Below, one piece after another: positions 23,586-34,108 of a DNA stretch of 64,000 bases. The notes under the pieces are model-generated. The model had not been told where the DNA came from, ran no database searches, and saw nothing but the letters and a program-made list of their open reading frames with translations. A program made the translations under genes and the position numbers. Location: assembly GCA_905178155.1 (NCBI GenBank), contig CAJINV010000002.1, positions 10,586,709 to 10,650,708 on the forward strand. Direction: 5' to 3'. How positions within the stretch are numbered: position 1 is the stretch's first letter; each line of letters opens with the position of its first letter. This DNA is from Amoebophrya sp. A120 (Eukaryota; Protista; Dinoflagellata).

Positions 23586-24848
23586 TCACGAAAGTTCTCG
23601 GTCACGTCCGTGACTGTTGTTATGTTCTTGTGTGTGCTGGTCTAGAATCCTCTTCACCTTCAAAAGAGCATTGGAAGCGCAATCTTCACGGAGGTCAACG
23701 TAGAACTCCATATCACGTGCATGTCGTTTCTTTACTTTATCAAGCCTCGCCCGGTGCGCGCTCTCAGGAAAATGTATCCAATAGGTCCGCCTGTTGTGCG
23801 TCTCATCGCACTCGGCTTGGGTGAGCGAGTCCGTCTTCGTAAACAACGTACGAATGTATGCACGTGGAAACAAAAAGAAGCCAAACAACTGGTTCGACAC
23901 GCTGCAATAATTCATTGCGCAGATCAGATCAAGTTCGTTTAGTTCCTGTCGGGTGAAAGATCGCTCCATTCCTCTGCCGGCCCACATTGAGAGCTTCAGC
24001 GAACGGCTTCCACCAAAGCGTGCAGCAGAGTCGACCGAGGGGACACGGTGCACGATTTTCAGATTGTCGAGGTAGCTATTGTACGTAAGCCACAGGTTGG
24101 TGTCCGGGAATGTCAAATGTAAGCCGAGCGGCTCATAAACGTTCATCTGCATCTGCTCTATTGCGCCGCACTGAACCTTTTGCGCACACGACGCCAATGC
24201 ACGAAAACCTCCGAACCAGCTGCCTAGGCTCCGCTGCGCGTGCGGCTGAAGCCAGTGTTCACGCATTCGATCGAGGACGTCAACTATTGGCATGTTCTCG
24301 GACTCGTTGAAAATGTGCGACCGCTTGTCGAGCTGCTTCAAAGCGCCACTACTTCCTCCAGCTCCCATAAAATAGGCACCGGAATCGGGCGCAACAAAAA
24401 CTTGCGGAAAACCACCGGCCTTGATTCGATGATACATGAAGAAACGTCGGTCGCCGCTCGCACTCGTTCTAACCGATCCAATCGTTGCTTTTATCGCCAA
24501 AGGCATCCAAGTGCCAGAAAGGTCTACGCCACTCTCGGAAAACTGCACTAGAGCTGTGGCCGGCCAGGCAAGGGGAAGGAAGTAGAAATGCCATCTTGGA
24601 TCGGCGTCTGCCACTGCATTCCGAAAGAATTCTCGACCACACGCAGCGACTGTTACTGGCGAAAGGGTTCCTCGCTTCGTAAGCTTCGTTAAATGCCAAC
24701 GCAGGGGCTCTGCCGGTTCATTTTTCGTCGTTCGTAGCCCCGCCACAGCGCGTGATAGGGTAGGCCGGGAGGCATCGTGCGACGACAATTTTCCAAAAAC
24801 CGCAGCCGGTTCGACTTTCATTCCGAAAGTCAGCTTTTTCCCGTACAT
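23586..24848 (-). CDS. Array paralog P1, degenerate double PD-(D/E)XK-like protein
   Basis: Family motifs DPRWHFYFLP..WPA, W.PL.IK, YEPLG...FP, HRVPS, GFFLFP, YWIHFPE, DMEFYVDL. Start taken at ATG 24848; the ORF is open to 24968. Confidence 0.85.
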   Translation of the reverse strand: MYGKKLTFGMKVEPAAVFGKLSSHDASRPTLSRAVAGLRTTKNEPAEPLRWHLTKLTKRGTLSPVTVAACGREFFRNAVADADPRWHFYFLPLAWPATALVQFSESGVDLSGTWMPLAIKATIGSVRTSASGDRRFFMYHRIKAGGFPQVFVAPDSGAYFMGAGGSSGALKQLDKRSHIFNESENMPIVDVLDRMREHWLQPHAQRSLGSWFGGFRALASCAQKVQCGAIEQMQMNVYEPLGLHLTFPDTNLWLTYNSYLDNLKIVHRVPSVDSAARFGGSRSLKLSMWAGRGMERSFTRQELNELDLICAMNYCSVSNQLFGFFLFPRAYIRTLFTKTDSLTQAECDETHNRRTYWIHFPESAHRARLDKVKKRHARDMEFYVDLREDCASNALLKVKRILDQHTQEHNNSHGRDRELS

Positions 24849-25266
24849 GGTCGAAAGTGGCGTTGACGTTGCTACTGAAAGACGCCAGCGACTCTGGAAC
24901 TGGATAATTAGTATATCAATGTGCTTGTTGCGTATTGTGATACTAAAACTGTGGTTCTCGTGGCTCACAACATCACCTTGCGTTTTCGTCCAACACGCTA
25001 CCTAACCCAATGCAGCGCCTCAGCAGTCACTACGTCTAGATGTTGTGACATACTTACTTACACAAAAAGTCAAAATACTCCTCTCCGCGCAAGAGGCAAA
25101 AGGTAGCGTCGCTCTGCAACATCAAGTGCAACTCAAACAATTTCAGCTGCGCTTCGTCTTTACTCTCTCCCGCACGTGTGTCAGCTAATCGTGTAGACCG
25201 CCGAAGTACTCCAGGGCTTCGCCTTCGGCAACAGTTGGCCGATTTTGGGCAACCCGTATGACTCAC

Positions 25267-32487: not shown

Positions 32488-32761
32488 GTTCTTCGAACTT
32501 CTCGTATGCGGAACATCAGAATCAGAACACTGACAAGGGACTATGCAGCGCGATCACGGACCGACTGCTCCAACAGATCATCAATCCGTTTTAGCGCCTC
32601 TCAGCAGCACTCGACATTCTCCCTCCTTCGCTAGGGATTCATTCTGGTGTAGTCTGAGTCTGAGGAACAAAACTACGAATACCAGGTTTGCGCTGCACGG
32701 CTCGCACCATAACGGCAGGCTAGCACTCCAGTGCGTCGCACAACCCCAATTTTTACCATCT

Positions 32762-34108
32762 CTAGCCTCCGTTGTACGTCTTGCCCATCAAAATATTTCG
32801 AAACTTTTCCAAGTACTCGGACGGTGAAGTTTCACGTAGGTCGATATAGAATTCCATGTCCCTAATAATGCGCTCCTTCACCCCTTCACGTTTCGCACCG
32901 TGCGCATCCTCAGGAAAGTATATCCAATATGCACTCCGACATCTTCTTCCGTCCTTCGCTATTGGAGCAAACATCTTGAGAAGGTAGTCCCTTGGAAAGA
33001 CGTAAAACCCGAGCAGTTCGTCAGCATCTGCAGAATAGTTTAGCGCGCACAGAAAGTCAAGCCTTTCCATCTCCTCCCTTGTGTATGGCCGTGTTGCTCG
33101 TAGTCTGCTATTCGTAGAAGTCGCTCTTACGACATTCAGAGCGCGTCCCAAGAAACCACTGCGATACGCAGGAACTCTGTGCAGTACCCTAGCGCAATCG
33201 ACGTAGCTGTTGAAAGGACTATTTGACGCAGGATCCGGAAAACTGAGATTCATACCCGCCGGACCGTAAACTGTCTTCTGCATGCTAGCCAGTGCGCCGC
33301 AGAACATCGCTTGGCAGGTGGAAGAAATCATTCCCTTGGAAAAATGACGAAACCAGTGAGCCTTGGATGCTGTTCCGCTTCCGGTACCGGTCGCACGTGT
33401 CCATTCTGCTCGCAGACCCACAAGAATCTCATCAAGCGAAACCTGCTCCGACTCCCGGAAGAAGCGACAGGAGACAGCAGATTGCGCCATGAAGAACAGA
33501 CCGGATTCCGGAGCGACTAGCACATTAAGAAACGGCCCATATCCGATCTTGTGGAACAGGAAAGTCCTTTCTTTACTTTCTGCCGTCTTAACTTTCGCTG
33601 TCGTCACTGATGATGCCGGCTTCTGTATTTTGAAGGTCGATTTCACCACCAGTGGAAACCATGTGTCGGAAACTACGCCCTTTTCGCAGTATTGCACTAA
33701 AACAGACGCTGGCCAGTGGTGGGGAAGTGTGAAAAAACGCCAAGCGGTATCCACTGCACGTATTGCGTCCTGCAAGAATTGTGCTCCACTTTCCGATACA
33801 ACGATCGAGCCCCGTTCCCGCTTTCTTGAGACTGAGCTTTGCACTAAATTTTGTGCGACCAAATCTCCCGGGGCGCTGCATGCAGCTTCATCGATATAGC
33901 TGGCAACACTATTTACCGGCAGCTGTGCAGTTACGGCCGCGGTAATGAAGCGCCGTTGTGGTCGTTGAACACGGGCGAGTGCAAGTCGACGATGTTGTGC
34001 CGCACAAATTATGATCCCCCCGCTCTTCAAACGTAACTCCTGCAAGGATTGCACGTTCACTGCTGGAATAAGGTTTGCCTTTGCGCTCCCGATGCCAATC
34101 GCAAACAT
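32762..34108 (-). CDS. Array paralog P6
   Basis: DTAWRFFTLPHHWPA, WFPLVVKST, HRVPA, RPYT, YWIYFPEDAH, DMEFYIDL; most similar to P2 by eye. Confidence 0.88.
   Translation of the reverse strand: MFAIGIGSAKANLIPAVNVQSLQELRLKSGGIIICAAQHRRLALARVQRPQRRFITAAVTAQLPVNSVASYIDEAACSAPGDLVAQNLVQSSVSRKRERGSIVVSESGAQFLQDAIRAVDTAWRFFTLPHHWPASVLVQYCEKGVVSDTWFPLVVKSTFKIQKPASSVTTAKVKTAESKERTFLFHKIGYGPFLNVLVAPESGLFFMAQSAVSCRFFRESEQVSLDEILVGLRAEWTRATGTGSGTASKAHWFRHFSKGMISSTCQAMFCGALASMQKTVYGPAGMNLSFPDPASNSPFNSYVDCARVLHRVPAYRSGFLGRALNVVRATSTNSRLRATRPYTREEMERLDFLCALNYSADADELLGFYVFPRDYLLKMFAPIAKDGRRCRSAYWIYFPEDAHGAKREGVKERIIRDMEFYIDLRETSPSEYLEKFRNILMGKTYNGG

Follow-up and report, generated by a model that had tools for sequence, protein, structure and literature searches.

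MepB of Staphylococcus aureus is a bacterial protein of about 160 amino acids (aa), encoded in the mepRAB operon, that consists of a single domain of the nuclease fold (PDB 4LQE). Binding of MepB to both DNA and RNA is reported in a passage of PMC12321651 that cites Agah 2014. The homing endonuclease I-Ssp6803I (PDB 2OST; PDDEXK_5 type) and the archaeal Hjc resolvases have a related fold, but they are catalytically active, have two acidic residues and a lysine, and function as dimers or tetramers. RAP-domain proteins (PF08373) of myzozoan and algal organelles are a different family, in which a nuclease-like fold has been reused for organellar RNA binding and the gene families have expanded. 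We compared these systems with six tandem genes of the parasitic dinoflagellate Amoebophrya sp. A120 that lie in a 64,000-nucleotide stretch of DNA, hereafter the window (assembly GCA_905178155.1, contig CAJINV010000002.1, positions 10,586,709 to 10,650,708). Taken together, our data indicate that the locus is probably an old array of A120 nuclear genes for catalytically dead double PD-(D/E)XK proteins, which are likely nucleic-acid binders.

Organization and age of the array

The minus strand of the window carries, between positions 23586 and 34108, six long head-to-tail open reading frames (ORFs), all of them intact and intronless (Table 1). Nearly all long ORFs of the surrounding gene cluster are on the same strand. 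Six single-exon database proteins (P0005, P0001, P0006, P0002, P0003, and P0004) have the same lengths as copies 1 to 6, respectively. A first-pass annotation, made from the DNA sequence without database searches, had described six tandem paralogs with shared ordered motifs and unrelated N-termini. We found every motif that it listed; copy 1 deviates slightly (RSF for RPY, LDL for LDF, and VHR for LHR), as does copy 5 (KFYVNL). The N-termini of the six copies do not align; the alignable region starts 63 to 159 residues in. The length range given in that annotation, about 420-470 aa, was accurate for five copies but not for copy 4, which has 510 aa from the first ATG.

Pairwise identity between copies was 31-35% over the full length and 34-38% over the core, the exception being copies 2 and 6 (about 50%), and 51 columns of the six-copy alignment were invariant. 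A profile of the six copies, run against 1.8 billion library proteins, matched every copy with E=1e-145 to 1e-157, and chance is therefore excluded. The proportion of differing synonymous sites (pS) between copies was 0.78-0.84, whereas the corresponding nonsynonymous value (pN) was 0.33-0.46. The synonymous sites are saturated, so the ratio of the two substitution rates (dN/dS) could not be estimated between copies. Saturated pS together with a lower pN indicates that the duplications are old and that the reading frames were kept by selection. The six copies are an old array maintained by selection.

Predicted fold and family assignment

AlphaFold models were made from the six sequences alone (predicted local distance difference test score, pLDDT, 72) and from 46 family sequences (pLDDT 87.9; predicted template modelling score, pTM, 0.85), and structures were compared with approximately 48,000 PDB representatives. 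The model consists of two alpha/beta domains, at core residues 1-145 and approximately 160-341. Both predicted domains have the arrangement of the PD-(D/E)XK superfamily, that is, a helix, a three-strand meander, and further strands plus a helix. In the 46-sequence model, domain 2 matched I-Ssp6803I (2ost) with Z 13.1 (142/148 residues, root-mean-square deviation (rmsd) 3.2) and MepB (4lqe) with Z 11.4 (139/149 residues), followed by NhoI, Hjc, RecU, and DpnI. Domain 1 matched 2ost with Z 10.2 in the six-sequence model, and D212 (Z 6.9) and Hjc (Z 6.4) in the 46-sequence model. Across both domains, the matches to Hjc, D212, NhoI, DpnI, and RecU were in the range of Z 6-8. Foldseek returned the SPARDA nuclease domain, Hjc, and MepB, with probabilities up to 1.00. 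A tandem PD-(D/E)XK fold had been proposed from the motifs, and the predicted structures confirmed a restriction-endonuclease fold in both halves of the array proteins. A domain arrangement like that of single-chain PvuII was ruled out (rmsd 11 Å, Z 6.1). Alignment of domain 1 with domain 2 by hhalign was not significant (probability 0.3%), and an origin of the two domains by tandem duplication is unsupported. No sequence-level family was found for domain 1.

The closest defined family is MepB-like (PF08877), beside the I-Ssp6803I type. Four relatives retrieved with the six-copy profile passed the PF08877 cut-off: P0011 (E=3e-22), P0015 (2e-14), P0017 (1e-12), and P0062 (9e-4). A PF08877 match was present in 25 of the 46 aligned family members, and the family profile (A3) matched MepB (4lqe_A) with E=7e-14. 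The alignment with MepB spans PYS...D[FY]L, GxFxFPR, and YP, which correspond to the motifs that had been written as RPY..E...LDF, GFY.FP, and YFPE in the first-pass annotation. The profile match and the PF08877 relatives therefore identify domain 2 as a divergent MepB-like domain. The likeness to MepB lies in the fold of the C-terminal domain and the shared motifs; unlike MepB, the array proteins are eukaryotic and have an additional N-terminal PD-(D/E)XK domain and a long basic leader. The best name for them is fused double PD-(D/E)XK proteins with a MepB-like C-terminal domain.

Although I-Ssp6803I was the best structural match of both domains, the array proteins share only the fold with this type. 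No Pfam match to PDDEXK_5 (PF11645) was obtained, the catalytic acids are missing, and the genes are free-standing nuclear genes with no intron association. The likeness to RAP proteins is one of analogy: the array proteins had no match to the RAP model in the Pfam scan, and ordinary RAP genes are present in A120 at no fewer than 10 loci. Chains of the T. gondii mitoribosome gave weak structural matches only (Z 3.6-3.8). Neither the six copies nor their domains taken singly had a match in PADLOC or PHROGs, and word-based homology searches returned essentially nothing beyond the proteins already found.

The closest whole-chain structural matches were uncharacterised giant-virus proteins. In BFVD, the best was A0A076FH51 of Aureococcus anophagefferens virus (template modelling (TM) score 0.61, 355 columns), and others were A0A1V0SIJ8 of Klosneuvirus and A0A3G5A8P9 of Hyperionvirus. 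All three align across both domains, at TM 0.51-0.61 over 320-356 columns (Foldseek E=1e-9 to 6e-12). Likewise, the three best structure clusters in the ESM Atlas were from Nucleocytoviricota, with 288-324 residues aligned. Identity between the viral two-domain proteins and the array proteins is 10-12%. HMMER did not retrieve the viral proteins, and they have, as far as is known, no presequence-like leader, in contrast to the basic leaders of the array proteins. Resemblance to proteins of giant viruses and of dinoflagellates had been suggested before; the former held at the level of structure, whereas the latter did not extend to dinoflagellates at large, as only Amoebophrya and environmental contigs were found at the HMMER level among the relatives looked up.

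Catalytic positions

In domain 1, strand 2 begins W-P-A-[S/T]36 and strand 3 reads W52-x-P-h-h-h-[K/R]58, with V, L, I, or S56 at the (D/E) position. In domain 2, strand 2 begins at N198 and strand 3 ends h207-H208-R209, where h207 is L or V. The residues in place of the acids are those mapped in the first-pass annotation: S/T36 and V/L/I/S56 in domain 1, where the basic residue is K/R58, and N198 and L/V207 in domain 2, where it is R209. Across the 46 members, the acid positions of the canonical D...(D/E)xK motif were non-acidic in both domains, three relatives having D at position 198. The Lys position was basic in 92% of members at position 58 and in 95% at position 209. The catalytic D...(D/E)-x-K set was not found on strands 2 and 3 of any of the six copies. 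If the third strand of domain 2 is placed instead at 219-227, there are again no acids in the six copies, and D/E-x-K-like strings occur in a few environmental members. As read from the alignment, the canonical metal-binding acid pair is absent from the six copies in either register. With no acids for Mg2+ at the canonical positions, the array proteins are most likely non-cutting.

Relatives and evolution of the family

A search of 1.84 billion representatives with the six-copy profile retrieved 62 proteins at E<=1e-3. Thirty of the 62 relatives were looked up; every named one was from Amoebophrya (A120, A25, or the MMETSP transcriptome) and the rest were from environmental contigs. The family has at least 25 genes in A120 and includes four or more tandem groups (Table 1). 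Each gene of the second and third arrays and of the two pairs encodes a short basic leader, one integrase-repeat-like unit, and two nuclease-fold domains. In a maximum-likelihood tree, the six window copies formed one clade with a support of 99 in the Shimodaira-Hasegawa-like approximate likelihood ratio test (SH-aLRT), and copy 6 was the closest paralog of copy 2. Branches were long and nearly star-like, with 0.5-0.95 changes per site. The six-copy clade was nested in a 13-member clade that is restricted to Amoebophrya (SH-aLRT 99).

The integrase-repeat-like unit is an N-terminal segment of about 55 aa with the pattern F..AR.....L.....W......RP..IP..P...Y...GW....DFLG, and resembles INT_rpt (PF14882). 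It was present in nearly all other members, including the A25 and environmental proteins and those encoded by the remaining A120 arrays. A model built from the repeats of P0066 matched 42 proteins, and P0011 and P0015 were also weak Pfam INT_rpt matches. The unit was not found in the clade members that were scanned, which were the six copies, P0007, P0008, P0009, P0012, P0013, and the ORFs of loci L007 and L008. In its place, the 13-member clade has long, unrelated leaders that are basic and acid-poor. P0066 itself, a JGI metagenome protein of 785 aa, has a helicase C-terminal domain followed by approximately nine tandem integrase-repeat-like units. It was ruled out as a family member, having matched only the N-terminal repeat columns, and it shows that the integrase-repeat unit is a widely reused module in proteins of marine microbial eukaryotes or viruses.

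Leaders, targeting, and expression

Each of the 13 clade members has 2-8 Arg/Lys and 0-2 Asp/Glu in its first 30 residues, and the whole leaders are net positive, although they are partly acidic past the first 30-40 residues. Short basic leaders, MFSRSLLLKSSAATSSRAPRRSRQ being one example, are also found at the start of several A120 members with the integrase-repeat unit. The clade leaders contain neither a hydrophobic signal peptide nor a membrane segment, and secretion of these proteins as effectors was ruled out for that reason. It is plausible that the basic, acid-poor leaders serve mitochondrial import, but their composition would also fit a disordered basic tail.

A120 has, according to PMC8136515, a putative AT-rich, cryptic mitochondrial DNA (mtDNA) contig of 3.1 kb with a piece of cox1, a mitochondrial RNA polymerase, and 31 mitoribosomal proteins. 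In another Amoebophrya, the mitochondrial contigs number about 500 and abound in inverted repeats (PMC12005148). The existence of any mitochondrial genome in this parasite has been debated (PMC6482013, PMC8136515). Given these nucleic acids, a mitochondrial target, either RNA or hairpin or branched DNA, is conceivable. The handling of fragmented mitochondrial RNAs, as proposed in the first-pass annotation, is plausible by analogy with RAP proteins.

Two other genes in the same one-direction cluster bear on mitochondrial function. One encodes a homolog of ribosomal protein S9 that is extended by 365 aa at its N-terminus, and the other a protein resembling mitochondrial poly(A) polymerase. Their presence is consistent with functional mitochondrial gene expression in A120. 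Support for expression is indirect: a homolog of the array proteins is present in the MMETSP Amoebophrya transcriptome, and 80-87% of the words sampled from the stretch were found in four runs guessed to be RNA.

Alternative explanations

Several observations weigh against the interpretation of the array as mitochondrion-imported, inactive MepB-like proteins. None of the six copies had a Pfam match at E<=10, whether whole or as separate domains, so the MepB-like gathering score was not reached, and the six-copy profile had no match among PDB sequences; the MepB-like membership of the copies rests on intermediates and structure. The catalytic positions were mapped by secondary-structure register (helix 1 and strands 1-3) rather than by superposed coordinates. 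Domain 2 has several conserved acidic and histidine residues at other positions (H208, D/E242, D247, E296, H299, D313, and D319), of which D247 is kept in 88% and D319 in 92% of the family, and E296, H299, and D313 are conserved within the six; there is a small chance that these polar residues form a non-canonical site. The leaders, at 60-160 aa, are longer than typical presequences, and the first 45 residues of copy 4 are not presequence-like, the internal Met46 being a much more presequence-like start. Lastly, the A25 proteins placed in the tree all lay outside the 13-member clade. That clade may be young in lineage terms or may be evolving very fast.

The main rival keeps the same inactive double-nuclease fold but places the proteins in the nucleus or cytosol, as DNA or RNA binders domesticated from a giant virus or mobile element. 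Such proteins might act in genome defence or in the handling of the many transposons and introners of the genome, and their leaders would be disordered or nuclear-localising tails. The whole-chain matches to Nucleocytoviricota proteins agree with this origin, as does the integrase-repeat unit, which is typical of phage and mobile-element proteins and is found in most relatives; in some of these it starts at residues 2-16, leaving no room for a presequence, although environmental ORFs that begin at the repeat may be truncated. Fast-diverging tandem arrays are also common among conflict genes, and the leaders are long and partly acidic beyond their first 30-40 residues. However, PADLOC and PHROGs gave no match, the first 30 residues are basic and acid-poor in 13/13 clade members, and many A120 members with the integrase-repeat unit have short leaders that resemble classic presequences. 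We consider a nuclear or cytosolic role of this kind unlikely.

Two further explanations concern activity. The proteins could be active nucleases with a relocated, non-canonical active site, given that H208, R209, D/E242, D247, and D319 are conserved polar residues outside the canonical positions and that migration of catalytic residues has been documented within the PD-(D/E)XK fold (PMC3384342). Nevertheless, strands 2 and 3 of both domains lack a conserved acid among the 46 members, which makes cleavage improbable. D247, moreover, aligns with a residue of MepB, which is said to be a binder, the abstract of the 2014 MepB study reportedly describing its catalytic residues as not conserved. The other explanation, that the array is a remnant in decay and without a function today, would agree with the six genes having no annotation, but it is very improbable when six ORFs are uninterrupted despite saturated synonymous sites, pN is well under pS, 51 columns are invariant, and a homolog is transcribed in the MMETSP Amoebophrya. 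An array of inactive double PD-(D/E)XK binders is thus the reading that we retain.

Other features of the window

Elements of similar sequence were found in the 3' flanks of three array genes (Table 1). The elements that follow copies 4 and 5 are purine-rich on the coding strand, and their conservation greatly exceeds that of the array genes' own synonymous sites, which are saturated. They could represent a constrained signal in the 3' untranslated region (3'-UTR) or intergenic DNA, or recent conversion. Elsewhere in the window, a DEAD-box helicase gene is split over two ORFs, with the DEAD domain upstream and Helicase_C downstream. Two long ORFs, of 775 aa on the plus strand and 845 aa on the minus strand, overlap in a G+C-rich region (0.56-0.59) with strong AT skew.

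Table 1. Array genes, flanking elements, and neighbouring features of the window, with the other loci of the family in A120. Positions are those of the window unless a contig or locus is named.
Feature	Position	Strand	Product	Domain 1	Domain 2	Protein or locus	Remarks
Copy 1	CDS 23586..24848; ORF 23586-24968	minus	420 aa	24228-24662	23589-24197	P0005	Coding sequence (CDS) from first ATG; 5' limit of ORF is GTG at 24968
Copy 2	CDS 25267..26607	minus	446 aa	25867-26304	25270-25833	P0001	Leader residues 1-101; copy used for model
Copy 3	CDS 27179..28450; ORF 27179-28456	minus	423 aa	27776-28192	27182-27742	P0006	CDS from first ATG
Copy 4	CDS 29049..30581	minus	510 aa	29625-30107	29052-29591	P0002	CDS from first ATG
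Copy 5	CDS 31126..32487	minus	453 aa	31741-32256	31129-31707	P0003	
Copy 6	CDS 32762..34108	minus	448 aa	33365-33811	32765-33331	P0004	
3'-flank element	28921..29020	minus					100 nt; about 30 nt downstream of copy 4 stop codon
3'-flank element	30991..31090	minus					Downstream of copy 5; 82% identical to copy 4 element
3'-flank element, shorter version	27030..27075	minus					46 nt; downstream of copy 3; 80% identity
Ribosomal protein S9 homolog	12557-14020						
Mitochondrial poly(A) polymerase-like protein	54953-56554						
Split DEAD-box helicase gene	47715-48827 and 49189-50253						
Overlapping ORFs	8559-11149	plus and minus	775 aa and 845 aa				
Family, window array	C2						Six genes
Family, second array	C2:9.95 Mb					L001 1884-8815; L012 621-2108	Five genes
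Family, third array	C9:2.99 Mb					L010 521-7438	Four genes; direct Pfam MepB-like match
Family, pair	C12:3.09 Mb					L011 11-2742	
Family, pair	C5:5.28 Mb					L009 1638-5283	
Family, single loci							At least 7

Proposed function and significance

In the reading that we favour, the product of each array gene starts with a variable basic leader (60-160 aa) and continues into a core of about 350 aa, in which two PD-(D/E)XK domains pack against each other. The C-terminal domain is of a divergent MepB-like type and the N-terminal domain of the I-Ssp6803I/Hjc/DREN structural type. With no acids to hold Mg2+ but with conserved basic residues remaining (K/R58, R209, and further basic residues), the proteins would bind nucleic acid rather than cut it, much like the DNA- and RNA-binding MepB of S. 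aureus. Fused in one chain, the two domains would form a built-in pseudo-dimer and could mimic the dimers or tetramers in which I-Ssp6803I and Hjc work, and divergence between paralogs could give different targets. By analogy with MepB, nucleic-acid binding is the probable function of the array proteins. That the leaders are mitochondrial presequences, and that the targets are RNA or structured DNA of a cryptic, reduced mitochondrial genome, is a possibility that we put forward tentatively. The fullest form of the proposal is somewhat doubtful: a virus-like, dead double-nuclease scaffold would have been recruited as at least 25 mitochondrion-imported binders, each paralog recognising a different piece of RNA or of hairpin or branched DNA from the cryptic, fragmented mitochondrial genome of Amoebophrya.

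MepB-like proteins have no established function, and eukaryotic ones are undescribed, PF08877 being unmentioned in the literature searched. Here, the genes for a fused, two-domain, acid-less MepB-like form have multiplied in a parasite to 25 or more. If these are indeed imported binders, they would make up a new family of organellar RNA/DNA-binding proteins alongside RAP, PPR, and HPR, and would provide a handle for finding the elusive mtDNA of Amoebophrya; should the leaders target mitochondria, pull-downs could recover the missing mitochondrial nucleic acids. If the proteins are not mitochondrial, they would still illustrate clearly how a nuclease fold found also in giant viruses has turned into a non-catalytic binder.

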